Below are positions 3,466 to 50,824 of a stretch of 64,000 nucleotides of DNA, one piece after another. This stretch comes from Ruditapes philippinarum (taxonomy: Eukaryota). A model generated the notes under the pieces. That model was not told the DNA's origin. It searched no databases and saw only the letters and a list, made by a program, of their open reading frames with translations. The translations under genes were made by a program, and so were the position numbers. How positions within the stretch are numbered: the first letter of the stretch is position 1; each line of letters begins with the position of its first letter. The stretch is from positions 62,001 through 126,000 of the forward strand of contig NW_026862878.1 in NCBI RefSeq assembly GCF_026571515.1. The letters run 5' to 3'.

Positions 3466-6400
3466 ATGACAACCAACAAAAAGCGAGACAGAAGTATGGA
3501 ACGTATGCAAGAATTTGACAAACGATCTTTGCGAGAAAATTGGGGCCAAATCCCACCGGGTGCTGCTGTAAAGAGTTCAGGGGCAAAATCAAAGGGGGTG
3601 TACCACCACATGAAAACAGTAAATGATCCTGATTCAAGATCAGTTTGTAAACAAAGAAAAACAGTTAGATCTTATAGTGGCGAATGTAAAACTCAACAAG
3701 CAATACATAGTAAATCCCTCAACAGGTCGGAAGTAAATCAGAAAAGAAAACGGAAAAAGAAGGAACTAAGTAATCATTGTTTTACATGTAGTAAACATGA
3801 GAAAATTAAGTCAGAAACAACTGGTAAAGAAATACAAAGCCAGAAGTGTGATAAGAAATGTTCAGAAGCTGACGGAAAAAATATTTTCAGCGGAAAGAAA
3901 GCTCAAGCTAAAACAACGTATCTCTATATTGTAATAGGCGATAACATCACTAAAACCAGTAATTTAAAACAGTTTTTAGTACACAGAATGGGAAATCCGA
4001 CCGCTCTTGACTTTGAACTCAAAGATGTTGCTAATATACATTCATCACAAAATCTTTTGAAAAAGAGCATTATAAAAGTAAAATTCGAAAGTTATAAGAA
4101 AGCTTCTGCAGCCCGATACCTTCTGAATATAAGCAATAGAAACGTTTCTAGCAAAGTGCGATGTTTTTTCAAACGTACAGAGGCAGAAGGAGAGGAAGTG
4201 GACAACGCTTTGAAAAGAAAAACAAAACTTGAAAACACATGCAAGGAAATCGATGAATCAACTGAAAGAGAGCTAGACAAGCACGATAAAAAGATCAGAG
4301 ATGTTTATGAAAACTTTTCACGTGTCAATGAGCTCCTGAAAAAAGGCATTCATATGTCTGAATTTGGCAAGATTTTTAACGAACAGAATGCATTCAAAGA
4401 TAAATTACAAGAATTAGAGAGACAAAGAGTAGAATTCCTAAATTGCATAGCATGCATGAAATCATGCCTTGAAAATCTCATTACTCATGATAAGTTTGAA
4501 CAAGAAGTGAACAAAATTAGAAAGGAATTTGGGGTTGAATGCCGACGTCTTTCAGTAGCTTTACCAATTTATGCGAGGCGAGAAGATATACTGACCGCAA
4601 TAAGAAACAATCAGGTCTGCATCATTCTTGGTGAAACCGGGTCTGGCAAGTCAACACAGATGGTACAATATCTGTATCAAGCTGGCTTTGCAGGTACAGT
4701 ATAGCTCAAACAAATTCCTTTCCACACTATGAAAGTTACGTTTCCACCTCTACAGATGTTATGTGGATTGTAAGAAACGTTCTATAAATGTATTGTAGTT
4801 TATCATATATGATTTATTCAATTTCAGCAAATGGTGTAATTGCATGCACACAGCCTCGTAAAATAGCTGCCTTGAGTCTTGCAGCACACGTTGCATCGGA
4901 GCTTGCCTGTAATGTAGGTCATGTGGTTGGTTATAAGGTTGGAATGAAGACGACATCTACTGGGTTAACAAAGGTACTTTTCATGACAGACAATGTTTTG
5001 TTAAATGAATGCTTGCAGGATAGAATTCTTTCAAAATATTCTTGCATTATCATAGACGAAGCACATGAGCGTAGTATTCATACTGATTTACTACTTGGCA
5101 TGCTGAAAGAGTCAATCAGTGAACGACCTGATCTGAAAGTTATAATAACTTCAGCAACTATTGATCCCTTTATTTTCAAAGACTTCTTTGGTGGGCATAA
5201 ACAATGTCCTGTTTTGAAGATATCTGGGAAAACATTTCCTGTAGATACTTTCTGGGATGAAACAAATTGTTTCGACAATCCCTTTCCAGAAGATTATGAA
5301 GAAAAGGCTCTCAGAAAAGCAATTGAAGTACACACCAGTACCAAAATTGAAGAAGGTGATATTCTTGTCTTTGTAACAGCAGCACTAGAAGCAGACAGAT
5401 GTGTAGAAAAAATGAAAAGTCGCGTTAATGAGAAAGAAATCCAATGCTTACAGTTGCATGGAAAACAAAGAACAGCTGAACAACAGATCGTATTCGAAAG
5501 AACACCTAAATGTAAGCGGAAGATCGTATTCGCGACAAATTGCGCCGAGACATCGATAACTATTCCAGGCATTAAATTTGTAATAGATACAGGTGTTGTT
5601 AAAGAGATGAGATATGATGCAAATAAAAACATAAACTCACTCAATGTTTCTCCTGTCAGTCAAAGCTCAGCTAATCAACGCAAAGGACGTGCTGGAAGAA
5701 CGGCATCCGGAAAATGTTATAGACTTTACACTGAAGAAGATTTCAGACGAATGGAAAAGAATGCACTACCCGAAATTCTTAGAGTACAAGTTTCTAAGGC
5801 CTTACTTAATTTAATGGAGTATGGGGTTAATCCACTGAATTTTCATTACGTTCAGTCGCCATCTACTGAATCCATGCAGAATGCAATGTTAGAACTCACT
5901 GAACTTGGTGCTATACATGATCTGAGTTTGACCGATATTGGTAAATTGATTGCAAAGTTGCCTGTTGAGCCAAAGTTAGGTGTATTGATAAAAAAGGGAA
6001 TTGAAATGGATATTGGCATAGAAGCCATAGTAATAGCTTCAAGTTGTAATCAGACAGGAATGTTTTTTCGAGTTGGGACACAAGATGAAAGAAAATTGTC
6101 AGATGTTAAGAAAACTAAATTCTGTCACCAAAATGGAGACTTGCTGACACATTTGAATGTATACAGGGAATGGAATGCACAACCAGAGAAAGAGAAAGGA
6201 AAGTGGTGTGAACGAAACTACATTAATGGGAAGGTCATGAAAGAGATTAGAGAAACAATTAACGAAGTAGTATACACTCTTAACAAGGACGCAGGTGTTA
6301 AAATAAAGCATCATTTCAGGTCAACAAAAGAGGCAGATATTCTCGTGCAGGATCTTTTGTTTGAATGCATGTCCTCCGAACTCGGATATTATCTTGGACA

Positions 6401-9071
6401 CGAATCAGCCGGTTATCTAATCCTCAAAAGCAAACAAAGGGTACAGGTTCATCCATCATCAGCAATAATGTCTCTTGGATACCAACCGACATGGATTGTT
6501 TTTAACAGGACATTAAAAACAACTGCAGATTTTATTACTGGAGTAACACCAGTAAATGAAGAAGCTGTTTGTGAGGCATTGACGACTGGGAAAATATCTT
6601 TCGACTTAAATTTCCTAGAAACTCAAAAAATTACACTTGCATGTCATATTTTGGTCGGAAAACACGTATATTGGCAATTCGTCGGAAACATGCATAAAAA
6701 TCGTCAAGTCGTTGAAGATAGAATTCGAAAAGAATGCGAGGAAACTTTGGTAATCATTGAAACAAATAAAAAGCAAGGCAAAATAAGTTTATTCTGTCTC
6801 CCAGAATTTATAGACAAAGCAATCGTTATGTTGCAGAGAATTCTAGAGCCAATTCCAAGTATATTGCTCAGAGAGTCAAAAGAAATGTATATTGGTAACG
6901 AAAACAGTGGCATTCGTATTGTTTTGCGCGAAGGAGGAGAGGGTGTTGATGTTTTGCTGCCTAATGAATTCCGTTCCATCAAAATCTTTCAGAAGGAAAG
7001 TACACAGAATTATCATATAACAGAAGAAAGTGCCCGTGAATTATTTGAATTTTACGGCCAAGTTGAATCCATATCGCGGCCTTCTAAAAAGAAACGCCAA
7101 CAAAAATTACTATGGGGAAATGTGACATATTTTCATCAGACTGATGCATCCGTAGCATTAGAAGAAATTAACAACGACGCAGACATAGAAATTGTAGGCG
7201 AGCAAATAGCATTGCATAATAATATCCCTTTGAATAGCCAGTCATTCAAAATGAAACTCACGTGGTTTAGAAGGCTATCAAGGGGTTATTGTTTTGTTAA
7301 CGTAACGGAAGTAGGGGATATCCCGATACTTCTAGATTCAGCTCCGATTATTAACGGGATAAGACTCGAAGTGTCTCCTGCTCGAGAACAGTCTGATTTG
7401 TACATAACTGGTTTGACACAGGAAATAACTGAAGAAGACGTGAAAAAAGCCTTATTGGAAGTTCTTGAAAAGTCCTTCAATGATAATATGGATAGATTCA
7501 AAATAATCATCCCACGCACAAACGCAATTTTTAAAAGTAATGAACTCGAGGGAAAAAACAAACAAATTTCAAAAATGGTCTCTTTCTTTGGAAATACTGA
7601 TGACTTTGATGTTCAGGTAAAGAGATATGGAGAAAAAACGGTTATTTGCACTGCTCATGTTTGGTTTACTGACCCACAAACATGTCACGAGACTGCAGAA
7701 AGAATGATAAATGGAAATGCTCAAATCGATAGGAGTAAGGTGCATGTATCTCTTGAGTGCAATTCAACTGTTTACATTAGTAACAACTTGTTCCAGATAG
7801 TAAAAGAGGATATCGATACTTTAATAACGCGCTACAAAGACAGAGAATCAAGTACAACTATAGAAATAGTATATATGAAATCAGGTAATGTAGCATTAAT
7901 AATCAAGACACTGACCTTTCAAAAGCTTGCTAAAGCAAAGGCAAAAGTTGATGAAATAGTTGGCGGAGAAGAATTAAAATGCGAAGATGATTGTAAATTT
8001 CGAGTGATGTTTAGAAAAGATGGAAAGGAATATATTAAAGAAGTGGAAAAGGAAACTAACACAATAATATTGACTGACGAGAGAGTAATGACGGTATACA
8101 TTCAAGGACTTCAACATAACAGAAATCGTGCTGTAGATTTGATTAAAGTGTACAGCACGGAACAACAATCTTCTCTTGAAAAGGACATTCGTCTCAAAGG
8201 GGACGAAAATCCACCTGGACTGATGAAAGCGTTACTAGTTAAGTATGGCACAGATTTTGAAGTTCTTAAAGAAGAAACAGGAATAACAGGTGTTTACTTA
8301 GAGCCACGTTTACATGAAATTACTATTACTGGCACAAAAGAAGCGACTGAAAAGGCTACAGAATGTATAAATAGAATCAAAGAAAACATATGTATATCAA
8401 GCGTTGTAAATGCTTTCGAGAATGAGTTACCGGACTGTCCAATTTGTCTTTTCCCTGTTGAGGAATCAGATATGTACATACTTGAATACTGTGGACATGC
8501 ATATTGTCGAGTTTGTCTTGCGTCCCAAATACAAAATGCAGTGAAATACAAACAACTACCTATCATTTGCGCTTCAGAAAATTGCAATAAACCTTTAGTG
8601 ATAAGAGATATAAACTTTCAGTTAAAGGTGGGAAACATAAAGAAAAAGGCTCTATTGGATGCATCTTTGGCTTGTTTGGTAGGCGACAAGAGCAAACCAT
8701 ACAGATATTGCATTACACCAGACTGTAGTATTGTGTATAGGACAAGTCGAAATGGAAATGTGTTCGTATGTCCAATGTGCCAAGTCAGGATTTGTACCTC
8801 ATGTCATACACAGTATCACGATGGGCTTTCTTGCTTTATGTATAAAAACGCAGGGAAGGAAAAGTACGAAGTTGACGTATGGCTAAGGAGAGATCCAGTA
8901 AATAGAAAAAGGTGCCCGAAATGTAGATGTGGAATAGAAAAGAAAGGTGGCTGCAATAAGATATACTGTACTCTGTGTAAAGCACATGTATGTTGGAAAT
9001 GTATGAAATATTATCCAGAAGCTGATGACTGCTACAGACATTTGCAAAAGAAGCACGGTTCATTTTATTGA
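3466..9071 (+). CDS. DEAH-box RNA helicase / RRM-KH / RBR E3 ubiquitin ligase fusion (plant DEAH11/DEAH12-like), paralog A; exons 3466-4693 and 4828-9071; 1823 aa
   Basis: ORFs 3466-4704 and 4788-9071 join through a phase-1 GT..AG intron (4694-4827; GCAG|gtacag...atttcag|CAAAT), giving QAGFA-A-NGVIACTQPRK. Helicase motifs: I GETGSGKST, Ia TQPRKIAA, Ib MTDN, II DEAH, III SAT, V TNCAETSITIPG, VI QRKGRAGR. These are followed by HA2/OB-like and RRM/KH-like segments, then RING1 (CPICLFP..CGHAYCRVC, from 8436), IBR (CITPDC..CPMC..CTSC..H..C) and RING2 (CPKC..GGCNK..C..C..CWKC..CYRHL..H). A splice acceptor ttcatttcag ending at 3390 implies an upstream 5'UTR exon. Confidence 0.93.
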
Positions 9072-12000
9072 ACATCATTGCTAACATTTAATACAAAAAC
9101 AGTAATGCCGGTACGAAATATCAAATAAACCCTTTGCGGTAAATATAGAAACACACAGATACTGTGCGATTTAATCAGAGTGAAAGATACAACAGCTCAC
9201 CTATAACCATGTTTGAGTCAAAGCTGTCCAGTAAATTCATCCTTTAATATTTAAAACATTAAACTTATACATTTTGAAGAAAGAATACATGTATATTCTG
9301 ATTATGGAAACAACGAAAAAAAAAAGTATGAAGCATTAAAAATGTTCAGTCATGGCAGACAGACAGCTTTAACTACTAGTCGGTGCAGATCAACTCAATA
9401 GGTTTTGATTCGGAGTGAACAGAGTTGGAAAATTATTTTGACTATTTCTCATATTCTATCGTAATTGTTTTTTCGAGGGATGCTATTACATATGCGCGCG
9501 TGCACACATAAATCTGATACAGGTTTTTTAATCTTTATTAACTATGTATCTCGTGAGATGCAAAAATTACAAATTCATTTTTGACAATCTTACCACTTCT
9601 TAGTTGATGTAAAGTAACAAATACCTGTCTCAATAAACCCCAAAAAAACTTTTCATAGAATTTTGTCATTGATTTTATTTGTAGTTATTAAAATATTTTG
9701 ATTCTTTATTGGTACTTTTCAACTTAGAAAAATATGAAACTAGCAAAACTTTTCTTCAGATAATGAAAACATATTCTTTGTTGTTATTGTATAAAATTAA
9801 TACAACAGTTATACTTCAATTGTCAATATTTTTCAAGCAAGATAGTAAACTTTTGTATTTTTTGTATTTATTTCAAGAATAAAGTACAGTTTATTAATAT
9901 AAAGTTTTAAATGCCTTTTGAAAAAAAGGCGTTAATTATACACCCAATACCTTAAAGGAGATAAAAGAGAAGATAAATAAAAGAGGAAGACATGAAAATA
10001 ATAAGGAGAAGTCAATGTGCATTAGTTATATTTGGAATAATCAGCAAAAATTAAAACGGTCTAAGTTCGACTCGAACCCGAAGCGGCATAATATGTCATT
10101 TGGCTGTTTTCGACATTTTAACCAACTACATTATAGACGCATATGCTGAGCTTTAACTAATAAACAAAAGATAGTAGGCAAAATACTATTGATATCCCCC
10201 ATTTCTTAACCATGGGATAATTAATGCAAAAAAATGGCTGATTGATATTTTCGGACCATAATTAGAGTTTTTAGGCCATTTTCTTTAAACTATAATTGCC
10301 ATTATATAGTTGATTTATAATTTTCGTGTTTATTCCGTAGATATTAACCTTGAAATTGTATATGTAATATAAGTGAATGTTATGAATGTATGGACACTCT
10401 GCAATGCGTAAAATGTTGAATTCTTCTTAATTTACTTTCCAGTATAGTCCATGAACATAATATTTTCAATTTTGCCGTTTTAGACTTTCTTTATTGATTC
10501 CTGTTTTATATATTTTGTTAATAAATACAATTGTAATTCATTGACTGTACTGCAGGATTGAGGCAGATCATTTAAGAAAATTTAAAAAAGTGTCATTTTA
10601 TCATAAATATTTATCATTTTACAGATATGTTATCATTCAGAATGATCTTTTACAGATATTGATAAATACTTCTCCCTGTTGAAATATTTAAAGTGTTTTA
10701 AACACAAACGACACATCTGTATAGACACACTATATTATAAAGGCTGGTAAGAGTTTTGTCCCTTGAAGTTCAACCCAACAAAATAAATTTTTTTATAATA
10801 CTTCCACATTTTCAAGATCTATTTCTATTATAGAAATTTTAAATTGATACATTTTCTATTATGGTAATTTTAAATTGATACATTTAAATTATTTAACATA
10901 ATTATATACATTTTGCAAAAGAAAATGTGTTATGATTTACATGTCATTGATTGTGTATGTCGTATATTGGCTTCTATTGAAATAATATACTGTTATAAGC
11001 TTTGTAGCAAACATTTGAATAATTCACATCATTCATTCGTTTCACAATTTTTGTTAATTAATGGTGATGCTTCTGTGTATAATTAGATGATATGATTCAC
11101 CTTAGGCAAAAAGTAACCACATTATATTCATTGTAATATAAAGGTATACTTGCACTTTTAGGTTATACAAATATGTCTGCAATGAATGCAATAATAAATG
11201 ATATTTTGAAATAAACATACAGAAATAATACAGTATATGTTATTTAATGTGTAATTTTTTGGTAATTAACTAAATCATTTATTACACTCAAAATTGGCAT
11301 AATGATATTAATACTTCTAGTCGATGCTTTCATTATAGAAATTTTAAATCACTTTTAAATGTAGAAAGATACCTAATATTGGACTTACCATTTATTTATA
11401 AAAAATCTTTTTCTAAGTTTAGGTGTTCTAACCACAAACTTAAAATAGAAATCGGCAGACATTTAAATATACCAAGAGAACAACGCTTTGTGTACATATT
11501 GTTTAAATAATAGAAATATCTCATTTATAGATTGTGGAATTTCATGCTTTTTTCCATTGCTATAAAATATAATGAAGTACGCCAACTATACTTACAAATT
11601 GGTATGATGGAAAGAACAAATTTAAATGATTTCTACTCATTAATGAACTCGAGTTTGTTGATACAACAATACGTAATATATGTATTTATATACACCATAT
11701 TCTTTGTAAAGCTGACGATATTAATTAGAGGGACGTAAAATGTTTATCCATGTTGCTTTGTATATTATGGGCCGGTGGCCTTATTATCAAATAAATATGT
11801 TGTTGTTGTTGTTGTTGTTATTCAGTCAAATAGTCTAATAAACATAATTGACATGAAATATTAACGTCGCAACTGATTTTATTTAAGTGACCAGTGTAGA
11901 CCAATGTAATAACGTAATAATAGTGTTAATAACGAGACTTACTGGCACGGTCAACGTTTTCGTCCATGTTTTTTTGGTTTTTGTATTTTCTGATCGCAAG

Positions 12001-12444
12001 ATCAGTAAATACATAGCTAACATCCACGGTCTAACACAAAATTTCCTAACAGTCCTAACAACGCAAAGTAGTTCTTAACTCAAAACTGCTTAAAAACCAG
12101 CAATTTAAAAGAAGAATAATTTTTGATATAGGCATTTACGAATTACAGTGCATTGAAAGTTCAGATCAGTTCAATAGAAATATTGAGGTTACAATCACAA
12201 ATTTCGCGGGATGAATATCATTTTTTAATCAATGAAAATGCTATTTTTAGCTATGTCGAAATTACTGAATACTCCAGGGCGTAGTTACAAATAAATCTGA
12301 CTGCCGAGTAGTGGAATATATACATGTCGGACTGTTTTTTGGCGAGAAGATTTTCGCTAAATTATTTTTATCAGTGTTAAACAGGTTTATCGTGAACAAA
12401 ATACCTCGAATTGATATTGTTTTGGTTTTATTAACCTGTCAATT

Positions 12445-13473
12445 ACATACTGATTACGCAGTCGATACACCAGTATGTTAATCTTCGGTAGATGTTCGGT
12501 AAGTTCCGTGAGAAGTACGCTGTACGATAGAATTTAATTTAATTTGTATCTCTAAACTAAGTGTACTCAGCGTTCTATAGCGCAATAGGGTAAATCTAAG
12601 TGCCACACGTGTTTTAAGTTCGAGGCCTCGTTGGTCCATGTTTTTTTTCTTATTAATACTTTCAACATTATTGAATCTATATATGATTATTTTATGTTGT
12701 TCGTTTTGTTTGATTATGTTTTACTTAATTTTGTTATGCATATACTCTTTTTAAATAACATGTTTTTTTAAGAATTCATGTTTAAAATTAAAATGGATTA
12801 AAATCAATAAATGTCATTTCAATGCCGTAAAACACACTACTGTTCTATTAAAATATACTGCAAAAATAAAGAAAGAGTACTAAAACAATGGCAACAGTAA
12901 GAATCGAACCACAGACCTCTCAATTATCAGGCATTCTCTTCACCGACTGTCCTATTGTGAATTAACGAAAACTTTCACATAAAGCTGGCGTGACTTTCAA
13001 TCGATGACTTATATACTCCACATTAATTCTCGTAAAACTACACGGACCAAACCGAAGTGGGATCGATATTTAAATGAGTCCTATAATGTATTCAAAATTG
13101 ACAGGTCAATAAAATCAGACTATAAGGATTACAAACACGAAATGGAAATTCTCAATTTAGAATTACAATGTACATGTATTTGTTTTTATTCAGGCTACAT
13201 ATTACGTATTACTTCACCGTGGTGCAGGGGTATCGCGCTCGTATCGCGCTCGTTTAGGGTGTGAGAGGCCTATGGTTCAAATCCTAGTCGAGGCAACTTT
13301 TTTTTTGAAGTGTCTTTTTTAAGGAAGTAGCCACGATATGCAAGGATAAAGTGTGGCTGTCATAAAAAATGATTTTTAATGCAACTCTAGTCATGCAAAA
13401 TTCCATATGTATCAATCTCAAACTGTTATAGAAAAAAATCTTAACGCAGTCGCTGCGTAAGATGAATTATAGT
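12445..13473 (+). mobile_element. Degenerate Helitron/Helentron-type non-autonomous element carrying tRNA-like segments
   Basis: 5' TTACGCAGTCG with TTCGG/TTCCG micro-repeats; 3' hairpin ACGCAG-TCG-CTGCGT (13444-13458) about 10 nt before a CTAGT-like end (ATAGT); internal A/B-box-like segments near 12575, 12900 (minus) and 13220. Confidence 0.45.
13212..13296 (+). pseudogene. tRNA-Pro(AGG)-derived pseudogene/segment with an 11-bp internal duplication
   Basis: GGGGTATCGCGCTCG..TTTAGGGTGTGAGAGGCC..GGTTCAAATCC..CGAGGC aligns with the eukaryotic tRNA-Pro(AGG) consensus. TATCGCGCTCG is duplicated (13231-13252), the acceptor stem is broken, and a T9 run follows. Confidence 0.55.
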
Positions 13474-13604
13474 ATATAAAAATAAACCTATAGGAAAATA
13501 CATACAGATACTAGTAGTCAGTATGATTTAGATTGCAAAGATCAGAAAATACCACAGAGCTTGCAGCCCTTTGATTATTTAATTATGCGCATGCCTGACA
13601 GGAA

Positions 13605-13810
13605 GTCGACAGTACGACAGTGACAATACGACAGCACGATTTTGACAGTACGATGGTGACAATACGACAGTACGATGGTGACGAGTACGACAGTACGATA
13701 GTGATAATACGACAGTACGACGGACTGTCACTATCGTGCTGTCATGCATCTCCATTGTACTGTCGTATTGTCATCACTGTACTGTCGCACTGTCACCATC
13801 GTACTGTCAT
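13605..13810. repeat. Foldback of 22-bp subrepeats (GACAGTACGATGGTGACAATAC) in inverted orientation
   Basis: About 5 forward units (13605-13722) followed directly by about 4 reverse-complement units (13723-13810). Confidence 0.8.
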
Positions 13811-16808: not shown

Positions 16809-17036
16809 ATTGGCTGATTTAGGGAATTGTCACGTGCATTGTGACGTAATTTGCGCTTAAGAAAGTTTTGTGTCTATCACATAAAGTTTCATTTGCGCGA
16901 TGTCACCATTTTTTTGTTTCCCCAAGAAAATAGTTCAGATGACTTAACTTTTATCAGGCGATGCTTACCTCATTCGAAAGTACGTTTAATATAATTTACT
17001 GTAGATTTAGGATTTATTTAACACAATTTAGTAAGT
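16809..17036 (+). promoter_or_regulatory. Candidate promoter and non-coding first exon of helicase-RBR paralog B
   Basis: ATTGG 16809, GGGAATTGTC 16822, CACGTG 16831, TGACGTAA 16842 and an ISRE-like AGTTTCATTT near 16885, followed by a consensus donor GTAAGT at 17031. Confidence 0.35.
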
Positions 17037-17380
17037 AAAGCTTTTGTTGAGTAGACTTAACGGTTTTATTGGATTCAGTTTTATCTCATCATTGTTGCCA
17101 GCTTAATTTCATGTATTTCTTTTTTTCCTTGACAGAATTGAGGACGAACATGTATTGTCAATGGGAAAGGATGAATGGTTAAACGCTCCTAATTTTCCTT
17201 TCATAATTTTAATAATAAGTAGGTATTTATAGAATTTTTTGAGAGTTAAAGGAAATTTTTTAAATTCAAAAAATATACCCTTTTAAAAATTTAAAAAATA
17301 GAAAAAATTTTTGTTTTTTTTTCTTTTTTCATGGGCAACACTGAGTATGTATAGGTCATATTGCGACTGTTCAGCTTTAT

Positions 17381-18381
17381 TACTGTTGTACAGCGTTCAC
17401 CGGAAATTTCCTCCAAAACATCGAAAACGAAAGTAAAAAGCACAGGAACTTGAAATTTAATCAATAGATCACAAAATATGCGTGTATTAGTGATATAGCC
17501 CTTATCTCTATATAAAAAACACCAGGAATGCAACGAACAAAAAAACGAATATGCCAACCCAACCTGAATTTAGCACTTTAACAAAGAAAAATCTTAATGT
17601 CATTCCGATTAATAATAGAGATAAGGGCTATATCACTAATACACGCATATTTTGTGATCTATTGATTAAATTTCAAGTTCCTGTGGTAAAAAGTGTACGT
17701 CGAGTTCACCCGAGGTAATGTTTCAACTTATTTCTCCATCATAACTTAATCGATTTTTACAAACTAAACAAATTTGTGAAGCTGAATATATCTGGTTTTA
17801 AGGAAGTATTTGCTTTTTCGGCAAAATGAATACTTTTTGTTAATTTGGCGATAAATTGTAGTGTTTTTGTTGACATTTGCCATGATTTGCGAACGATGTT
17901 GATATTTACCACTAAATCAAGTCCAAAACGCATTTTCTGTATCAAAATCCGTCTTTAGTACAAAATATAGACAGTCTTGCCTTGTGTACAGAGTCTAGCA
18001 GCTCTAGTTGATGGGTGACCACTGAAATATAAGTGGAGGGAAGTCTATAGTTTTTATCAAAGGCGAATTAGTTTTGATACAGAAAATGCTTTTTGGGCTT
18101 GATTTACTGGTAAAAGTCAACACCGTTGGCAAATGTCAACAAATACGCTACAATTTATCGCAAACTTAACAAAAAGTACATTTTGTATTCAATTTGCAGA
18201 ATAAAAAGAAAAGAATTCTGTAAAACCAGTTATATTCAGCTTCACAAAATTGTTTGTAAAAATCGATTAGTGATGGAGAATTAAGTTGAAACATTACCTC
18301 GGGTGAGCTCCACGTACACCTTTTTACTTTCGTTATCGATTATTTTGAGGGGCTGCTTCCGGTGAACACTGTACAACAGTG
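17381..18381. mobile_element. Foldback DNA transposon with about 330-bp imperfect inverted arms, (C)ACTG..CAGTG termini and 5-bp TSD TTTAT
   Basis: TACTGTTGTACAGCGTTCACCGG at 17381 pairs with CCGGTGAACACTGTACAACAGTG ending 18381. The arms pair inward to about 17970/18045. TTTAT flanks both sides (17376-80, 18382-86). Confidence 0.8.
17441..17685. mobile_element. 245-bp MITE with perfect 71-bp TIRs and 8-bp TSD GTAAAAAG (P- or hAT-type), nested in the foldback element
   Basis: 17441-17511 is the exact reverse complement of 17615-17685; GTAAAAAG at 17433-40 and 17686-93. Confidence 0.95.
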
Positions 18382-18779
18382 TTTATTGGTGGATAAAGAC
18401 CTCATGTTACCCTTTGAGTAGCACAACTGACAATCTGCTAGCTCGACTGGAAAGCCAGTAACAATAAAAATCAGATTATTGAAATGTATGGGTATCGTAT
18501 GTCTGGCTGTCCGGACTACTCACTACTGGTGCAATTTCATCCAAACTTTAAAGAAATTATCAATACAAAGTCTAGTTGTGTATTTCGTTGGCATTTTCCA
18601 GTTCATTGATTTTTGACACAGTTACGGCCCTTAAATGATTTTTATTTTTAAAGTTTGTCCGGACTACTCCTCTTATATCAATTGAAACTTTACTGGATTG
18701 ATTGGTAGCTCGAAAACTTACACGGGTTGTCCGCTTGATTAATTTTTGGCTGAGTTATAGCCCTTAAACAAAAAGGTTT

Positions 18780-20534
18780 TTTGAGCTCATCTGATGACAA
18801 TGTCCTAAAGGTGAGCTTGTGGCTAGAGGGACAATAGGTAACTGTTCTTTCGCTTTGATGTTACAGTCAATGCGAAAGTCAAAAAAAATTGCCAGCCACA
18901 AGGACTGGGATCCTTAGACTTATTTCCGGCCCTGATGATTTTTCCCGGCCCGGACTCTGAAAGGTACAAAGGTTGGAGAAAAAATATTTTTTGGTAAGGA
19001 AATTATCCAAGACAAGATGGTGGCTTACATTACTTAGCAAAAATTGGTTGTATCTTTTGGTGATTTTGGTTATCTGGGTCTGTGAATACAAGCAAAAATG
19101 GAAAAAAGGTCATCTTGGAAGTTTTACATATTTTAGGCCAAAAATTGTTTCAAACTAGCTGAAGTTTTGTTCGGACATGAGGACTGACTGTATCAAAATT
19201 TATCTCGGTCCTCCTTATTTTTATTTGGCGAGGTCCGAGGACTGACAGACTTTCGTACAGACTGATGTTATTCATTCCGTAATGATTTAATGTGGCTATT
19301 TTCTTTTGCGTGGCTAAAAAGAACAATAGAGAGAACAATATAGTAGCCACATTATTACTGTCCCGTTAGAAAGTCCGTCTGGCGTGCGTCAACAATTTAT
19401 TTAAACAACTTCTGCTCTTAAACCGCATGGCCAAATTTGTTGAAACTTTGCAGGGATGGTTTTTGTTTGAAGATCTACCAAATTTGGGTAAAGAATTAAA
19501 TACCATAAAGAACTCTGGTTGCCATGGCAATCAAAAGATTTTGTTTATAAAAAATCTTCTAGTAAAAAAAAAGTGCTAGAGCTTAGATATTTGGCATAAA
19601 ACATCTTGACCCAAGGGTCAAAATTGGCCTCGGCCCAGGGGTCATTGATTTTCCTTATATATACATGTATGTAGTAAAAACTTAAAAAATCTTCTTGCAA
19701 CAATAAAAAAGAGCTAGATCATAGATATTTGGCAACAAACATCTTCTAGTAAATGTCTACCATGTCTGTTCAAATAAAAGCCCTAGGGTCAAATTTGGCC
19801 CCGCCCCAAGGGTCATTGATTTTCCTTATATATATATAGTAAAAACATAAAAATTCTGTGACAATCCCAAACAGGTAGAGTTTAGGTATTTGGCATGAAA
19901 CATGTTCTAGTGTATGTGTACCATGTTTGTTAAACATAAAACCCCTAGGGTCAAAATTGGCCCGCCCCAGGTGGGGGTGGGGTCATAGATTTTACTTATA
20001 TGTATACATAAAAACCTTAAAAAACTTCTTGTGATTATAGATAAGATATTTGGCATGAATCATCTTCTAGTAAATGTCTACCAAGTTTGTTCAAATAAAT
20101 GCCCTAGGGTCAAAATTGGCCCCGCCCCAGAGGGTCATTGATTTTCCTAATATGTATATAGTATTAACTAAAAGATAATCTGCTTGTGAAAATCCAAAAG
20201 AGCTAAAGCTTAGATATTTGACCTGAAGCATCTTCTAGTGGTTGTCTACCAAATTTGTTCAAATAAAAGCCCTAGGGTCGAATTGGCCCAGGGGTCATTG
20301 ATTTTCCTTATATGTATGTAGTAAAAACCTAAAAAAAGTTCTTCTGAAAATCCAAAAGAGGTAGAGCATGACAAATCTAAACAACATTTAAAACACTGGT
20401 TCAATTTTGAAATAATTTTACACTAAAATTGCCTTGGTGAAAGTGTTTTCAAATTGTTATTCTGGGGTGGAAAGGAGCTCCATTTTGACCTTTTGACCTA
20501 TTTCTCAGGTGAGCGATCCAGAGCCCTCTAGGCC
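18780..20534 (+). mobile_element. Helentron-associated interspersed element (HINE) with about 160-170-bp internal tandem repeats
   Basis: 5' GAGCTCATCTGA..GGTGAGCT hairpin; GTCCGTC micro-repeat at 19373; repeats GGGTCAAAATTGGCCCCGCCCC at about 19615, 19786, 19948, 20107 and 20275; 3' subTIR CAGGTGAGCGA at about 20506. Confidence 0.75.
18828..19364. mobile_element. Putative TIR element nested in the HINE (GGGACA..TGTCCC, 6-bp TSD GCTAGA/GTTAGA)
   Basis: Interrupts the HINE between its 5' hairpin and its microsatellite; short terminal inverted repeat and a near-identical 6-bp flanking duplication. Confidence 0.5.
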
Positions 20535-21640
20535 AGATAAACAGGGACTTGTTCAGTTTACTCCTCAGAAACTACTGGTGCAATTTCATCCAAACTTTAC
20601 AGGAATGATCAGTACTAAATGTAGTTGTGCATATTATTTTTTTAAGTATTTTAAGGTTCAATGATTTTATATAGTTATGACCTTTTAATGTCTTTTATCT
20701 TTTTAAGTTTTGTTCGGACTACTTGTCTTATACTACTTATGCATTTTATATGAAACTTTACAGGATTGATAGGTTCCTCAAGTACTTGCATATATTAAAC
20801 GGTTTTCCAGTTGTATAACTTTTGGCTGGGTTATAGCCCTTGTATAAAAATGCGTTTTGCCTTGTTAATGATTTTTGTGTCTTCTGCTACATAGTAGTTG
20901 CAACATGCAAATGGCTATCATGAGGCGCCACATGTGATCACTGATGGCTCTTGTTACATATTCACAGTCATGATTATAATACAAGCTATTATTGTGAACT
21001 TTATCAAGCATAAAAAGATGTGCTTATCAAATTGATGTATATATTTCAATGCTATTTATAATATTATAACGTTAAATGCAATAAGAGGTAGTTAGTTATA
21101 TATTCTCAGTCATGTTATACTAATCTGAAAAGCCTGAACTAGAAGATTTTTATTTCTTCCCAGGCTTGAGTGATTAATCACAAATCTTGACAAATCAACT
21201 ATTTAAATTGTGTCTCCGCTGTAATGTTTTTTTAAAGCGAGTATGAATGGGAATAATAAGCACTTCTTTCGGCGGAATAGTAATTCACTTTACTGTATTT
21301 GGTTTATTCATTTTCGAAGCCTCTTTCCGTCTGGTCTTCCTTTTTTTAAAAAAAAAAAAATATTGATATACCATCGGCACGTATTCTCACATTCTAGAGC
21401 TTTACCGTTTTATTCAATAATTATGTAGCAAAATTCCAACCATTTTAAAATGTTTGACTGGTGTTTTAAATTTACAAAATTCATGTTATTAAAATTTCAA
21501 ATTGTTGTCATTTTCAATGTTTTATTCTTAATATATCAATAAGATGATGAAATATTTATTGTAACCATTCCCTTTTGCAATTCATTTCAGAAATACAGAC
21601 CTTTTAAAATCCAAAGGTGACCATTAGAAAAGGTGGAGTG

Positions 21641-24600
21641 ATGAACGAAGAGCCACACAATGACGGTTTGGCCGGTAGTAAAAGAGAAGAACCTGGCTCT
21701 AAGAAAGTTTCGAAAGATGATAGTAAAACTGATCAAAATGCTGATAAAACGGACACACGAAAGAAGTGGTATGCACATGGCAGAAGAAGACACACGTCTG
21801 AAACTGGATATGTTGGATATAAACAAGGTGAAAATGTGGAAAATGATCTAGGTGCAAGACCAAAGGAGTTTAGACGTCAAACATTTTTTAACAGAAAGTA
21901 TGAAAGGAGAGGATCACTGGGTAGTAAATTTCAAAGCGACATAACTAACGAGGGAGGAAGATGTTATCTAAATAAAAGCGGTAAGATTGACAGAGCAGAA
22001 AGGAAAGAACCTAAAGATTTTAAAACTACAAAAACATATTGTAGGAAAGAAGCACAAGGCGAAAATATTGAAAGACATGTTGACAAACCACAAAGTAACA
22101 TTGAGGGGAAACCACCTAAATATGTCAAGCCAGGTTTCAATAAAAATAGAAACAAAACACCAACACCAAAGTCATTCAAAGGAAGTAACATATCTTTAAA
22201 TACTGTTCTTCAAGAACATGGTGATGTAAATAGCACAAACAAAGCAACTGGAGGTCAGTCAATGAAGACAGAAGAAAATGTAATGCACAAGAAAAGAAAG
22301 AGCAAAGAGAATGTGAATAAAGTCACTGAACTTAAAAACCATGCAAAGAAGACGTGTCTTTATGTTGTCATTGGTGAAAGAATAATTAATCAAAGTAGCT
22401 TAAAAAACTTTCTACTTCATAGAATGGGGAATCCAAAAGCTCTTGAATTTGAGATTGCTGATTCCTATAATATTAACAAAGGGGGTTCTGATCGTAGTAT
22501 ATTATCTTTGAAGTTTGACAGTTACAAGAAAGCATCAGCAGCTAGACATTTGCTAAACAGAAATAATAGGACTGCTGTCGATAAAATAAGGTGTTCCTTC
22601 GATAGAGCAGAAGCAGAGGGTGTCGAAATTAATAGTGCTCAACAGAATGAGTGCAAGAAAGAAATTGCATTAAAAGAAATAGTGGCAACAGCTAGGTTTG
22701 AGATTGAAAAACACGATGAAAAAATCAATGATATCCGTGTGAAACTTGAAGCTGTTGCTGGGCACCTAGCTAATAAGCGCGGAGTCTCCCTTTTTGAATA
22801 CGACAAACTATCGAATGAAAAGCTTGCATATGAAGATAAACTGGATGAGCTAGAGAGGCAAAGAAAAGAGTTTACAAGATACTTGCAGAGCATGTCGGTG
22901 AAGTTGGAGGCTATTATTAATAATAAATGTGACAAATTTGAACACGAGCTGAAAGAAGTCAGGAAGGCATTTGGTGTGGAATGTCATAGGTTGCAATCTG
23001 CTTTACCGATGTACGCCAGGAGAGAAGAAATCCTATCAATCATTAAAGAGAACCAAGTTTGTGTGATACTCGGTGAAACAGGATCTGGCAAGTCAACGCA
23101 AATGGTTCAGTACATCTATCAAGCCGGTTTTGCAGGTATAATAGTTCAATTGTAAAATTGACTAATACGATCATATATCTTATAAGATAAACAGACATGT
23201 CATTTCTTATGTACATGTACTTTATAAATTTATATACCCAAATATTTTTAATATATGATATGGTTTTCATTTACTTCAAGACCACTTATAGTTGTATGCA
23301 AACAAACAACACACTAATGAATGGCGAGTCTAGATACTGTGTTCTTTCCTTGTCATGATGTCACTGCCCTTGCCGTCTGCAAACTTTAACGTTAATCATA
23401 ATTTTGGTATTTTTAACGGACTGCTTTCATGCTTGGACGTAACAACCTACACTAGATATTGTCCCAAAGTAATAGAAGGCGTGTGCCCTAAGTGAGAAAA
23501 CAATGGACAGAACTAGACAAAAATGAATTTTGAAAGGGGACTATATCCAAAGGGTGATTTATCACAATTTAGCACAGATTGACATAACTTTGTTAATTTA
23601 TTTACGAATTTGATTTTTACTTTGAAAACAGATCTTTTATGACAAAACTTGTAGGTTGAATAATGAAAATATAACATTGATTTTTATTCTATCTGTCAAG
23701 TTCTTTAAATTTGCTTTAATTTTTAATTTACAGGTAAGATTTATAATTCGACAAAAGAACACAAGACATAAAAATGTCATGTTGATTTATTATGTTATGA
23801 CATCGACCTTTAATTTGCCTTGACTGTTAAAGACTTTTTATTGAAGTTTACCTTCATCGTTTTAACTGTTATTTATTCTTTGATTAAAGAAAAACTTATA
23901 TCAAAACTGACATTATGATTTATTCAAATGTGACTTAAATGACCTTGACCGTGAAGGTCATATTATTGCATTTAGTTTAAAATGTTATTAACTTGTTAAA
24001 AATTAATTCATGATATATTATAATGGAGAAATTGATACTGGAAAATAGTCTTAACACTACGACAACACCTACATAATGAATTATTTAAGTATGGCCTTGA
24101 TCTGCAAATGTCAAATGTGGAAATTTAGTTGTATTTGTACAAGAAAATAATGTTTTCTAGGTGTATTATCTACCACAATATTCTTCCTCCTCCGATGACT
24201 TTGACTAAAGAAATAAGAAGAAGTTTAGCGCGGCTTATTATTGTAGGTTTGAAAATTTGTATCTATGTTCGCCGCCGTTAAGTTTAAATCCAGTACTTGA
24301 ACATTAGGTTTGATCTGTATTCATTTTCTTATGTTGCAGGTGACGGGCTAATTGCATGTACTCAGCCCCGAAAGATAGCAGCCGTAAGCCTTGCGTCACA
24401 TGTATCTTCAGAACTCGCTTCAAGTGTTGGTCAAGTCATAGGGTATAAAGTAGGAATGCAGTCGAAAATGACTGCATTAACAAAAGTAATGTTTATGACT
24501 GATCATATATTATTGAACGAATGTTTACAGGATACCATGTTGACAAAGTATTCATGTATCATCATTGACGAAGCTCATGAACGAAGTATACATACTGATT

Positions 24601-27600
24601 TACTTCTAGGTATGATTAAGGATGCCCTAAATAATAGACCAGATCTCAAGGTTGTAATAACATCTGCAACTATCGATCCAGACATCTTTGTTGACTATTT
24701 TGGCGGTTTAGACCTATGCCCTGTTCTTAGGGTGTCGGGTAGAACCTTTCCTGTAGAAGTGTTTTGGGAACAAGATAATGACGTTGACAGTTCGTTTTCA
24801 GACGATTATGAAAAGAAAGCACTTAACAAAGCAATCGAAATTCACCAGAATGAGAAAGAAGGTGACATACTTGTTTTTTTGACTTCAGCTGCTGAAACTG
24901 ATAGGTGTAAAGAAAGGATACTAAGAATGGTCGGAGAAAAAGAAGTTCAGTGCCTGCAGCTTCATGGAAAACTTAAACCAGAAGAACAACAGTTAGTGTT
25001 TGCAAATACACCAAGGGGGAAACGGAAAATTGTCTTTGCTACAAATAGCGCTGAAACATCTATAACAATACCAGGCATCAAGTATGTGGTAGATACTGGT
25101 GTTGTAAAGGAAATGAGATTTGACCCCAAAAAGAACATGAATTCACTTGACGTGGTACAAGTCAGTCAAAGTTCAGCAGACCAACGCAAAGGTCGTGCCG
25201 GAAGAACTTCGTCTGGTGTTTGTTACAGACTGTACACACACAAGATATATAGATCTTTTAAAAAGGCATCAAGCCCCGAAATCTTAAGGATACAAGTGTC
25301 ACAGGCTTTACTTAAATTGATGGAATTAGGTGTGGATCCGATGAGTTTTGATTATGTTCAGTCACCTTCTCCAATGGCGATGAAATCAGCGTTGGGGGAA
25401 CTGGAAGAAATTGGTGCGGTTGACACAAAAGGCATATCTGAACTTGGCCGATGGATTGCTAAATTGCCGGTCGAACCAAGGCTTGGGGCTTTAATTAAGA
25501 AGGGAATGGATATGGATATAACTTTAGAAACGCTTATAGTTGCATCTTGTTGCAACCAGAGTGGAATATTTTTCAGAATGGGAACACCTGAAGAGAAAAA
25601 GGAAGCAGACGCGAAAAAGATGAAGTTTTGTCATCTTGGCGGAGATTTATTGACCATGTTGAATGTTTACAGAGAATGGGATAAAATACAAGAGAAGGCG
25701 AAAGGAAAATGGTGTCAAACAAACAGTATAAATGGGAAAGCAATGAAAGGAGTAAGGGACATGATGAATGAGATGGTCTCTGTTATAAAGAAGGACTTAG
25801 ACTTAAAGATAAAGCATGAGTTTAAAAGCCCGCAAGACTCGGACGCTTGTGTACAAAACCTCATATTTGAATGCATGACATCCAAACTAGCTTATTACCT
25901 TGGACATGAAAGCGCAGGATATCTTATTGTCGATAGGCATCAGAGAGTACAGTTACACCCTTCGTCAGCGATTTTATCGCTTGCTTTTCAACCTGGTTGG
26001 GTTGTTTTCAATAGAGTTCTGAAAACTTCAGCAGATTTCATGACAGAAGTGACACCTTTGTCTGATGACGTAGTCAAAGATGCAATCATAAAAGGCAAGA
26101 TTAACGTTGACATGAAATTATTGGAGAATATGAAAGTTAAGCGTGTTCTTAAAGCTCCTGTTGGCAGGCATGTGTTTTGGAAGTTTGTAGGACCTATGCA
26201 CAAGAACAGGCGTCAGGTTGAAGAAGACATTAGTTTTGCCTGCAACGGATCCTTAATTGTTATAGAAGCTAACAAACAACGTGGTGAAATAAGTTTATTT
26301 AGCACAAATGAGTACGCAAAACGAGCTTCTTCCATGCTTCGCTCAATACTAGACGAAGCACCTCAACAGCTTCTTAACGAGTCACGCGAGGAACCAATTG
26401 GCCATGACAGAAGTTGCATACGTGCCGTTTTACGAGAAGGTGGTTCTGCGGTTGATATTCTTATGTCAGATGATTATCGGGCAGTTAACATAAAGCAGAA
26501 AGACAATGTAATGTTTGACATTAACGAAGAAAGCATCCAAACATTGCTTGAAGATTATGGACCTGTAGAACAGATATGGCAAACAACGGGGAAAAGACAG
26601 CAACAAAGTCCATTTTGGGGAAAGGCGACATTTACACACAAATACGATGCTAAATATGCTGTTGAAGAAATAAATGAAGATGAAAATTGCGAATTTAGAT
26701 TGTTACCAATAATATACGACTCCCAAATATCAGCCCCAAAACAAGGTTACACCATGAAGCTGACATGGTGTAGACGACTGGGAAAGGGACATTGTTTTGT
26801 TTATCTTAATCGGCCGGAGGATATGACGCAAATTTTAACGAATGCACCGATGATAAATGGGACATATGTTCAAGTTATGATTTCAAAACAACAGTCAGAT
26901 TTGTACATAAAAGGATTAGCACGAGATGCGACTGAAGATGAAGTCAGAGATGGACTTGGCAGTGCTCTTGGACTGTCTTCTTACGAATGTAGAAATAGAT
27001 TTCGCATAATTATTCCTCGTCTCAATGTGCCTATTGATAATAATGAAAAGGACCAAATCCAGAATGAACTTGCTTCGATTATTTCAATGTATGCTGATCG
27101 AGACTCATTTCGCGTACACGTTAAGACTTACAAACAGCAGACTGTAACGTGTGTAGCGTTTGTTACTTTTATGAATCCACAGATTTGTTACGACACAGCA
27201 AATGCTATGATAGATGATGATGTAGAAATACGGGAACATTGTATTGATGTTCAGTTAGAATGCAAGACGACGGTGCACGTAAACAAGAAGCTGCATGACT
27301 TCGTTGGACAGGATTTAACTAGTCTAGTAGACAGATACGTTCGCAAAAAATCATCAACAACTTTGAATATTAGACATCTTAAATCTGGCAATTTCTCTGT
27401 GGATATCAATGCGGTTTCACCGCAAAAACTGGCTAAGGCTAAAGTTAAGGTCGAGAATGTTGTCGGAGGGGATACGTTTGAATGCGGGGAAAAAGAAAAC
27501 TTACAGTTCTTTTTCAATAAGAATGGTCGAGATGAAGCACGACGTATAGAAAAACTAACAAGGACCCTCATTTTTGTTGACGAAAGACAAATGAAAATAT

Positions 27601-28571
27601 CTATACAAGGTCTTGTCCGTAACAGACTTCGAGCCATACAAATGATAGAAGATTATTTATCGGTCCATACACATGCTAAAGAAACAGAAGTTTGTCTAAA
27701 AGGGGAAGAAAATCCACCAGGACTTTTGAAAGATTTGATTATTAGATATGGGTTGCGTTTAACAGGACTTAAAGATGAAACTGGCATTTCTAAAGTATCC
27801 TTCAACCTACGGTTTCATGAACTAACTCTTATTGGTAAAGAGGAAAATATAATTAAAGCACAAGAACAGATAAAAAGTGTGAGAGCTGACTTGTCAACAC
27901 GGGGAAATATTAGAATTGAAGACGCAGATTTACCAGATTGTCCTATTTGTTTATGCCCAGTTGAAGAATCTGATATGTGTCGACTTGAATACTGTGGCCA
28001 TGCGTATTGCAAATGTTGTTTGGCTTCAATGATTCAAAACGCCGTATCAGATCGTGAACTTCCTGTTGTCTGTGCAGCAGAGGACTGCAATAAAGCTCTT
28101 GTCATAAGAGATATCAATACGCAAATAAAGATTGGCAATATAAAAAGAAACGCACTTCTTGACTCAGCTGTGGCAGCTTTGGTTATGAAGAAGAGTGAGG
28201 AGTATCACTATTGTATAACTCCAGATTGTGGAATAGTTTATCGAGTGACCAAGATTGGTGAAATGTTCAGCTGTCCTGTTTGTCGGGTCAGGATATGTAC
28301 AGCGTGCCATTTGCCATTCCATGAAGGTATAACATGTGCCATGTACAAGAGTGCTAAACAGAGTGGGGATTCGTTAGTGAAATGGCTGAGAGTTGACCCG
28401 AGTAATCGAAAATTATGCCCGAAATGTGGTTTAGGAATCCAGAAGACAGGAGGCTGTGAGCATATGGAGTGCAAATGTGGTGCTCATATATGTTGGAAAT
28501 GTATGAGGTATTTTAGTAGTAGCGGCTCTTGTTATGGCCATCTGAGCGAAGCCCATAATAGTTTTGTTTAA
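21641..28571 (+). CDS. DEAH-box RNA helicase / RRM-KH / RBR E3 ubiquitin ligase fusion (plant DEAH11/DEAH12-like), paralog B; exons 21641-23135 and 24340-28571; 1908 aa
   Basis: The first in-frame ATG is 21641, after an acceptor ttcatttcag ending at 21590 (same as paralog A). A phase-1 intron (23136-24339; GCAG|gtataa...gttgcag|GTGAC) lies at the identical position. All helicase motifs are intact (GETGSGKST, TQPRKIAA, MTDH, DEAH, SAT, QRKGRAGR). RING1 starts at 27939, followed by IBR and a RING2 with GGCEHM. Collinear with paralog A from the LYVVIG motif to the stop. Confidence 0.93.
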
Positions 28572-33640: not shown

Positions 33641-34110
33641 GGGGTAAATATTTTACAAGTTATTGTTCTTATTACCACTTTACTCTGTAACACGGGCAAA
33701 TTAGATCCATAACTATCATATTAATACTTTATTATGATAGAGTCACTTCAAGATTACTTTTTCGTTCTAAGGGAGACAACTTCGTTTTCGAAACAATATT
33801 TAATTTTTAAGAGTTTTGCCGTAGCAAATTTCAATGTTGAGTATATTAAAGAAATACATATGATGTTACTATTTTTGTTATTTTTATATATAGTTCTTGG
33901 CAAGTAGTGTTTATCAATAAAGTACCATTTCTTTTATGAGAATAACATTTTTGGCAGTTTCCAGAAAAGAATAGTTTAAAGCTTTAAAAAATCACCAATC
34001 TCAATTGACACATCTACAAGTTTTATCTCTGCAACTGCCTTCTAAAAACATTTAATTTATTGCTGTTTAATAAGAACGATTCGTTATTATAAGCAAGATT
34101 ATGACAGGAA

Positions 34111-38500: not shown

Positions 38501-38545
38501 AGACAATCATCATCATCATCATTAACAGCAGTTTGATTCAACATC

Positions 38546-38552
38546 TATAAAA
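38546..38552 (+). promoter_or_regulatory. TATA box of EF-hand gene copy 1
   Basis: TATAAAA about 60 bp upstream of the ATG|gtatgt first exon; conserved in copy 2. Confidence 0.7.
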
Positions 38553-38607
38553 GCAATAGATGTTTCCATTTGCAAATCATCGAAGAAGGACCGGTTCCCG
38601 AATCAAC

Positions 38608-45091: not shown

Positions 45092-45265
45092 GTGTTGACA
45101 TGATCGAGTAGTAATTTAAGGATCACTAGAAGCAAGGGTTCAAACCCTGTCATGTCCAAATCGTTGTTTCCAAGAGGAGAAAACTTTACACTCATTTTTC
45201 AGTACTGGTTTGTTCCAGAAACAGATTCGAGAATGTGCCGCTATACAACCGAACTAAAAAAACAT
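45092..45265 (+). mobile_element. Old CORE-type tRNA SINE
   Basis: B-box GGTTCAAACCC; the body matches the reverse complement of 58115-58310; homolog at 57847-58030. Confidence 0.55.
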
Positions 45266-50817: not shown

Positions 50818-50824
50818 TATAAAA
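50818..50824 (+). promoter_or_regulatory. TATA box of EF-hand gene copy 2
   Basis: TATAAAA at the homologous position upstream of ATG 50880. Confidence 0.7.

Follow-up and report, generated by a model that had tools for sequence, protein, structure and literature searches.

Ubiquitin ligases of the RING1-IBR-RING2 (RBR) type that also carry a DEAD/DEAH helicase domain constitute the Helicase/Plant I subfamily which, in the published summary of Marin's work, occurs in both unikonts and bikonts and has undergone multiple independent losses in animals (PMC2904391, citing Marin J Mol Evol 2009; see PMC3904995). This is one of only three RBR subfamilies older than the unikont/bikont split (PMC2904391), and, going by that same summary, its presence in animals has been in the literature since Marin 2009 (cited in PMC2904391). 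The closest described members are plant proteins. Thus, Arabidopsis DEAH11 (AT4G01020, DCS4) and DEAH12 (AT5G10370), cotton GbDEAH12, and soybean GmHELRP1/2 all exceed 1700 residues and combine a DEAH helicase, a spacer of ~600-750 residues, and a C-terminal RBR (PMC3904995). AtDEAH11, cloned as Dominant cop1-6 Suppressor 4 (DCS4), is recovered together with Prp8 on purification, and its mutants show altered intron retention; the six DCS proteins are jointly described as belonging to the spliceosome and as affecting the retention of introns (PMC11180117). DCS4 was called 'apparently plant-specific' on the basis of a screen in which the only animals were fly, mouse, and human, and the family is indeed missing from these three species (PMC11180117). 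In cotton, GbDEAH12 acts as a repressor of the transcription factor NAC072, to which it binds (PMC13407882). Here, we describe members of this family in the clam Ruditapes philippinarum. The 64,000-nucleotide stretch of DNA that was analyzed (contig NW_026862878.1, positions 62,001 to 126,000; hereafter "the window") contains, on the + strand at 3466-9071 and 21641-28571, two intact two-exon genes (A and B) encoding proteins of 1823 and 1908 residues, and a third paralogue (Z) is located upstream. A, B, and Z almost certainly belong to the Helicase/Plant I (DEAH11/DEAH12-like) RBR subfamily, an ancient eukaryotic group, as its three paralogues in venerid clams. The clam genes add members to a family that is already known but whose function has been little studied, given that our literature search found no functional study in animals, in agreement with a statement in an earlier note on this DNA, and that spliceosome association (PMC11180117) and NAC072 binding (PMC13407882) are functions known from plants alone.

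Long open reading frames (ORFs) are present on the + strand at 3466-4704, 4788-9071, 21617-23155, and 24297-28571, exactly where the earlier note had placed them, and at a GC content of ~35%, frames that stay open for ~1400 codons are much longer than chance would produce. The resulting gene models are as follows.

3466-4693, + strand: gene A (LOC132720487) exon 1, covering the disordered basic N-terminal region, the RRM-like domain with the helical hairpin after it, and the first part of RecA1
4694-4827, + strand: gene A intron, 134 nt, GT..AG, phase 1, between helicase motifs I and Ia
4828-9071, + strand: gene A exon 2, completing a protein of 1823 residues
21641-23135, + strand: gene B exon 1, beginning with the ATG at 21641, with a disordered basic N-terminal region longer than that of A, followed by the RRM-like domain, the helical hairpin, and motif I (23072-23101)
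23136-24339, + strand: gene B intron, 1204 nt, GT..AG, phase 1, positioned as in gene A
24340-28571, + strand: gene B exon 2, encoding the helicase core, the RRM/KH array, and the RBR, and completing a protein of 1908 residues

Reading of the junctions places the single intron of each gene at an identical codon position in all three paralogues, with helicase motif I encoded by exon 1 and motif Ia by exon 2. The gene A product has the same length as the RefSeq 'uncharacterized protein LOC132720487' (1823 residues) and both of its exon translations are 100% identical to that entry, and gene B has a match, P0007, that is 99% identical. Moreover, short Logan contigs from relatives carry uninterrupted full-length ORFs, an example being P0005, which encodes 1894 residues on 6784 nt. 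The possibility that these are pseudogenes was ruled out, the frames being intact and every catalytic residue being kept. The annotation of genes A and B, with splicing predicted from the DNA, is solid. All protein searches described below were run exon by exon rather than with the joined spliced protein.

The N-terminal part of these proteins precedes a complete DEAH helicase. Its elements in gene A, together with the helicase motifs of both genes, are located at the following positions.

Residues 1-144, + strand: gene A basic disordered N-terminus, with KRKRKKK at residues 93-99
3916-4167, + strand: gene A RRM-like ferredoxin-fold domain
4204-4557, + strand: gene A long helical hairpin
4630-4659, + strand: gene A motif I, GETGSGKSTQ
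4828-6614, + strand: helicase part of gene A exon 2 (RecA1/RecA2, winged helix, ratchet, and OB fold)
4848-4862, + strand: gene A TQPRK
4983-4994, + strand: gene A MTDN
5055-5072, + strand: gene A DEAHER
5151-5159, + strand: gene A SAT
5535-5561, + strand: gene A TNCAETSIT
5676-5699, + strand: gene A QRKGRAGR
24360, 24495, 24567, and 25182, + strand: gene B TQPRK, MTDH, DEAHER, and QRKGRAGR, respectively

The disordered basic region is very divergent among the copies, KRKRKKK being found in copy A. An AlphaFold2 model of the ordered part of gene A exon 1, with a predicted local distance difference test (pLDDT) score of 89.5, has a beta-alpha-beta-beta-alpha-beta fold followed by a long antiparallel helical hairpin leading into RecA1. 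Foldseek returned weak ferredoxin-fold/RRM matches for the N-terminal fold (E ~6e-3), and searches of this domain gave only P-loop noise in Pfam and nothing usable in the ESM Atlas (score 0.76). All of the helicase motifs are present in A and B (GETGSGKSTQ, TQPRK, MTDN/MTDH, DEAHER, SAT, TN(C/S)AETSIT, and QRKGRAGR), and those of Z are also intact. Pfam DEAD, Helicase_C, HA2, and OB_NTP_bind matches define a DEAH/RHA core N-terminal to the ligase in one chain. Because residues 2-595 of exon 2 match Prp22/DHX8, Prp43/DHX15, and Prp16 at E ~1e-105 (phmmer against the PDB), this core can be assigned as a full RecA1-RecA2-winged helix-ratchet-OB unit. The clam proteins therefore resemble Prp22/DHX8, Prp43/DHX15, and Prp16/DHX38 in having the complete core and all catalytic motifs, but differ from them in motif Ia (TQPRK rather than TQPRR), in motif Ib (TD(N/H) rather than TDG), and in possessing ~800 additional C-terminal residues, which form the RRM/KH array and the RBR. 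To our knowledge, no G-patch partner is known for the clam helicase-RBR proteins, unlike the spliceosomal DEAH/RHA helicases.

The region between the helicase and the ligase consists of RRM-like and KH-like modules, which in gene A are arranged as follows.

6687-6872, + strand: small alpha/beta domain
6975-7205, + strand: RRM1, a canonical RRM
7245-7379, + strand: partial RRM-like module
7398-7721, + strand: RRM3, with an insertion
7743-7961, 7965-8162, and 8175-8402, + strand: three KH-like modules, the third being the family-specific KH_DEAH11

Pfam identifies Helicase_C, OB_NTP_bind, RRM_1, KH_DEAH11, two IBR matches, and RING in both genes. KH_DEAH11 is matched at 70.1 and 60.1 bits, well above its cut-off of 27, and this domain is present in 20 of 20 full-length homologues; for gene A the E-values are 1.2e-19 for KH_DEAH11 and 2e-9 for RRM_1. 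KH_DEAH11_2nd is matched at 26.2 bits (7e-6), just below its own cut-off, and RRM_DEAH11 and KH_DEAH11_1st are matched only weakly. Hence, the clam spacer is recognized by models built on plant DEAH11, strongly in one case, near threshold in a second, and weakly in two others. Differences from plant DEAH11/12 are that RRM1 of the clam proteins is a canonical RRM_1 and that these animal proteins have no chloroplast connotation. An AlphaFold2 model of exon 2 residues 620-1413, built with 21 homologues (pLDDT 84.7), places the domains in the order small alpha/beta, RRM, partial RRM-like, RRM with insertion, three KH-like, RING1, helix, IBR, and RING2. Foldseek matches for the middle region are to multi-RRM proteins (Prp24, raver1, and HuD) and to the KH domains of Dim2p and GLD-3.

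The C-terminal ligase occupies the remainder of exon 2 in both genes.

8436-8636, + strand: gene A RING1
8694-8831, + strand: gene A IBR
8904-9068, + strand: gene A RING2, followed by the stop codon at 9069-9071
8952-8954, + strand: gene A catalytic Cys codon (residue 1785, context GGCNK)
9030-9056, + strand: gene A terminal CYRHLQKKH
27939, + strand: gene B RBR, CPICL
28455-28457, + strand: gene B catalytic Cys codon (context GGCEH)
28530-28556, + strand: gene B terminal CYGHLSEAH

Neither gene has lost a zinc ligand of the RBR, the catalytic GGC, or the terminal CYxHL...H, and the Cys/His ligands and GGC are kept across an alignment of 23 sequences that includes every copy. Foldseek matches the clam RBR to HOIL-1, HHARI, ARIH2, HOIP, parkin, and RNF216 with E-values of 6e-7 to 1e-4, with HOIL-1 (8eaz) only marginally ahead of HHARI, ARIH2, and HOIP as the best match. 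With HOIL-1, HHARI/ARIH1, ARIH2, HOIP, parkin, and RNF216 the clam proteins share the RING1-IBR-RING2 fold and its RING2 catalytic Cys, but none of these ligases has a helicase, RRM, or KH domain, and the clam proteins in turn lack an Ariadne, ubiquitin-like (UBL), or RING0 autoinhibitory element and have a variable residue two positions beyond the catalytic Cys. Most members have GGC-x-H, whereas copy A has GGCNK (window 8952-8960), its closest orthologue keeps this Lys, and Lys or Asn is also found at the +2 site in Portunus, Mactra, Haliotis, and others. The +2 general-base His is, as a consequence, not invariant in the helicase-RBR family.

Almost everything that the earlier note had said about architecture is borne out by these data. 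It had described two intact genes of about 1.8-1.9 k residues, for which the ORFs, the GT..AG junctions, and the lengths of 1823 and 1908 residues agree. It had also described a DEAH helicase with all motifs intact, which was recovered in both genes by Pfam, the PDB search, and motif reading; several RRM/KH-like modules, of which Pfam, AlphaFold2, and Foldseek give three RRM-like and three KH-like per gene; and a complete RING1-IBR-RING2 whose catalytic Cys is in place, confirmed by Pfam, the 23-sequence alignment, and Foldseek. All three module types are on one chain, as had been proposed. The assignment to the DEAH11/DEAH12 type likewise holds, given the DEAH11-specific Pfam KH/RRM models and the 'DEAH12, chloroplastic-like' names used by NCBI; the link to the plant proteins is drawn here from these models and names.

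As part of understanding how widely this architecture is distributed, we searched a profile of the RRM-KH-RBR region, built from the three copies, against 1.84 billion representative proteins and obtained 664 proteins at E<=1e-30. The best 150 of these 664 all have E-values below 1e-59, and most are aligned over nearly the entire RRM-KH-RBR region. Names, recovered for a sample of the matches, place homologues in bivalves (Mercenaria, Mactra, Dreissena, Sinanodonta, Tegillarca, Ostrea, and Saccostrea), gastropods (Haliotis, Physella, Elysia, Patella, and Lottia), an annelid (Paralvinella), crustaceans (Portunus and Cherax), chelicerates (Limulus and three spiders), echinoderms (Acanthaster and Antedon), a cnidarian (Nematostella), and a placozoan (Trichoplax). 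NCBI labels many of the animal homologues 'DEAH12, chloroplastic-like', and some are named after DEAH11. A search seeded with the Nematostella homologue returned animal proteins only. The helicase-RRM/KH-RBR order is conserved across Metazoa from placozoans to molluscs, and DEAH11/12-like helicase-RBR proteins with a DEAH11-type KH domain are present in at least seven animal phyla. Marin's definition of the Helicase/Plant I subfamily, RBR plus helicase, and its patchy animal spread fit the homologues named here, at least in the form in which they are summarized in PMC2904391. As represented there, however, that work is a catalogue, and the summary gives no RRM/KH array, venerid triplication, or function.

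The earlier note had described the locus as a tandem pair. Both genes are indeed on the + strand, but the count was wrong, the cluster having three members. When the entire 1.41-Gb assembly was searched in six frames with the C-terminal 423 residues, a third intact paralogue, copy Z (1760 residues), was located at C11365:50108-55723 (L008:2108-7723). This copy has the two-exon structure of the others and lies upstream of the window at a distance of ~6 kb, and there are exactly three matches in the assembly to the family-specific Pfam model PF24471 (A, B, and Z). BLAST and a maximum-likelihood tree, rather than gene order, identify one-to-one orthologues in Mercenaria (A with LOC123554059, B with LOC123554061, and Z with LOC123554058) with a Shimodaira-Hasegawa-like approximate likelihood ratio test (SH-aLRT) support of 100 and with 63-77% identity between the two genera. 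Because the three orthologue pairs form one clade that branches after Mactra, the triplication can be placed in the venerid stem, all copies having been kept since. Between the paralogues, synonymous differences (pS) are 0.74-0.79, which is saturated, while nonsynonymous differences (pN) are 0.25-0.30, and it is on this basis that we regard the copies as old duplicates under purifying selection. Gene conversion and recent duplication were considered and ruled out, as the paralogues are only 60-63% identical in nucleotide sequence. Identity also differs by domain, being 65-76% in RecA1-2 and RING1 and 35-51% in the RRM and KH modules; these values indicate that the catalytic cores are held and that the putative recognition modules are diverged among the three paralogues. 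Copy A is the fastest evolving, with the longest branch and the lowest orthologue identity. Taken together, the comparisons with Mercenaria indicate that the three-gene cluster is stable and ancient.

A fragment of this family may already have been in use as a marker. A venerid 'DEAH12' fragment served as a nuclear marker in a study of clam transmissible cancer (PMC8765752), and, although the primers from that work have no match in the clam copies at up to three mismatches, the best sites (4-7 mismatches) are at homologous positions in A, B, and Z, with only the reverse-primer sites (4-5 mismatches) rising above background. The spacing of the sites in copy Z reproduces the 441-bp amplicon. The marker apparently represents the RecA1-RecA2 part of the helicase-RBR family (window 5096-5584; L008:3757-4242).

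The DNA around the genes contains various repeats. The spacer between A and B has, at 17441-17685, an inverted repeat whose 71-nt arms match perfectly and enclose a 103-nt loop, resembling a miniature inverted-repeat transposable element or a hairpin, and approximately five tandem copies of a 160-bp unit at 19544-20400. The 35 kb downstream of gene B are repeat-rich, and no ORF of more than 145 residues was found there. Within this region is a tandem segmental duplication of ~11.4-12.8 kb (window ~34000-45100 and ~46400-57900; 87-97% identity), each copy of which has the same satellite arrays. Upstream of copy Z, and head-to-head with it, are at least three tandem C1q-domain genes on the minus strand, in each of which one exon encodes a signal peptide and coiled coil and another the C1q domain (Pfam C1q E = 4e-16).

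34114-35544 and 46533-48919: satellite in the duplication, 56-bp unit
38869-40382 and 51149-51837: satellite in the duplication, 25-bp unit
41822-41923 and 54211-54484: satellite in the duplication, 17/33-bp unit
29306-30767, 32304-33287, 52621-53409, 59569-60620, and 61343-61531: further satellites with 145-bp, 22-bp, 164-bp, 161-bp, and 20-bp units, respectively
L010:9238-9702, L011:789-1202, L011:9364-9828, and L007:918-1223, - strand: C1q-domain gene exons, outside the window

What might such a protein do? A DEAH helicase with its catalytic motifs complete, as many as seven modules of RNA-binding type, and a complete RBR are united in one chain, and ligases tethered to RNA-binding or NTPase modules are found elsewhere. 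MEX-3 (KH-KH-RING), CNOT4 (RING-RRM), ZNFX1, and RNF213 follow the same logic, but these proteins are unrelated in sequence to the clam proteins, employ RING or RZ-finger rather than RBR chemistry, and belong to other helicase/ATPase classes. The explanation that we favor, with moderate confidence, is that the helicase-RBR proteins remodel or regulate nuclear pre-mRNA or other ribonucleoprotein (RNP) complexes, with the RBR ubiquitinating a protein of the RNP. In this mechanism the helicase would clamp and translocate on single-stranded RNA inside the RNP, as is known for DEAH/RHA helicases, and the RRM/KH array would supply further contacts to RNA or protein. The array probably sets the specificity of each paralogue, since it is the part most diverged between them. 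The tethered RBR would then take ubiquitin from an E2 onto the RING2 cysteine and pass it to a protein of the same RNP, the three copies representing old subfunctionalized variants rather than an inducible immune effector. A nuclear, spliceosomal setting seems likeliest because of the association of DCS4 with the spliceosome and because Prp22, Prp43, and Prp16 are the closest matches to the helicase core. That RNA or ATP switches on the ligase is plausible. Several observations nevertheless weigh against this explanation. The GXXG loops of the KH-like modules are degenerate or non-canonical, and with canonical loops missing RNA binding by these modules is only putative. The Lys that replaces the +2 His in copy A and in its orthologue may weaken discharge to lysine. 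The spliceosome link comes from one plant paper, and plants and animals are very distant. Finally, the family has expanded to some extent in particular lineages, as Sinanodonta, Physella, and Ostrea carry it in tandem or in several copies.

The alternative that survives best, although we consider it unlikely, is that these proteins are cytoplasmic ligases for RNP or translation quality control, or regulators of germline mRNAs, in which the array finds stalled or marked mRNPs and the RBR ubiquitinates the trapped proteins. Functional parallels are provided by RNF14 on stalled ribosomes and by MEX-3 and CNOT4 on mRNPs. The domain logic is identical to that of the nuclear explanation, cytoplasmic mRNA regulators typically carry RRM and KH arrays, and UniRef names one Limulus cluster after MARF1. 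Moreover, the ARA54/RNF14 RBR subfamily is of comparable age (PMC2904391). On the other hand, both the helicases nearest to this core and the sole functional evidence are nuclear and spliceosomal (PMC11180117), and copy A has a basic cluster resembling a nuclear localization signal.

The earlier note had interpreted the genes as antiviral or RNA-surveillance immune effectors similar to ZNFX1 and RNF213, with a ligase activated by foreign RNA and with tandem copies and divergence reflecting immune-type diversification. We now consider this decidedly unlikely. The three tandem copies do lie beside the C1q-domain gene array, but this adjacency carries little weight because C1q genes are extremely numerous in bivalves. 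Orthologue identity of only 63-77% between two venerid genera, the rapid divergence of the RNA-binding modules, and the additional copies in some other molluscs are features that such effectors might have, as is the absence of the family among the vertebrate, insect, and nematode names sampled, multiple losses having been reported (PMC2904391). Against this, the triplication is old, the orthologues are strictly one-to-one with no further turnover from exactly three genome copies, and the copies are under purifying selection. No DEATH, TIR, CARD, or other immune-signalling domain was detected in 20 homologues at E<=1e-4, and consensus sites for NF-kB and the interferon-stimulated response element (ISRE) occur at chance level within the window, with none upstream of A or B. 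Our literature search found no link between the helicase-RBR family and infection. In addition, the plant orthologue AtDEAH11/DCS4 is spliceosomal (PMC11180117), which is the kind of role that the earlier note had named as speaking against its own interpretation, albeit one established in a plant and not from the clam genes. What is observed is a stable, old trio, and the immune interpretation of this locus is unsupported.

It is also conceivable, if quite improbable, that helicase and ligase act independently on one scaffold, or that paralogue A is an attenuated regulatory ligase, the fusion serving to co-localize the two activities and RNA not gating transfer. The replacement of the +2 His by Lys in A and its orthologue, and by Lys or Asn in several members, would fit such a role, as would the long branch and low orthologue identity of the A lineage and the fact that cotton DEAH12 works by binding a transcription factor (PMC13407882). 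Conservation of domain order from placozoans to molluscs, with helicase and RBR joined out to plants, argues for coupling, however (PMC2904391, PMC3904995), and all zinc ligands and the catalytic Cys are retained in every copy. The venerid trio might also be RNA-gated ubiquitin ligases with RRM/KH arrays diverged for different RNA classes, possibly viral or transposon-derived, in which the helicase frees the RBR to act on RNA-bound proteins or on RNA itself; we regard this as a speculative idea that is probably wrong. Least of all do we expect the RBR to ubiquitinate a ribose hydroxyl of RNA or another non-protein group, with the helicase feeding it an RNA end in ester chemistry like that of HOIL-1 with sugars. 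HOIL-1 (8eaz) is the top Foldseek match for the RBR, seven RNA-directed modules surround the ligase, and family members differ at the general-base His. The proposal is nevertheless entirely speculative, the order of the Foldseek matches does not separate the candidates, and we know of no biochemical precedent in which an RBR acts on RNA.

The main outcome for this locus is a correct annotation. Beyond it, a spliceosome-linked plant factor has clear animal relatives in the clam genes and many invertebrate homologues, and the link between RNA helicase activity and ubiquitin transfer by an RBR becomes approachable in animals such as Nematostella, sea stars, and bivalves. If the venerid trio were RNA-gated ligases, they would represent an arm of RNA surveillance that has been lost from vertebrates, insects, and nematodes and, hence, has never been studied.

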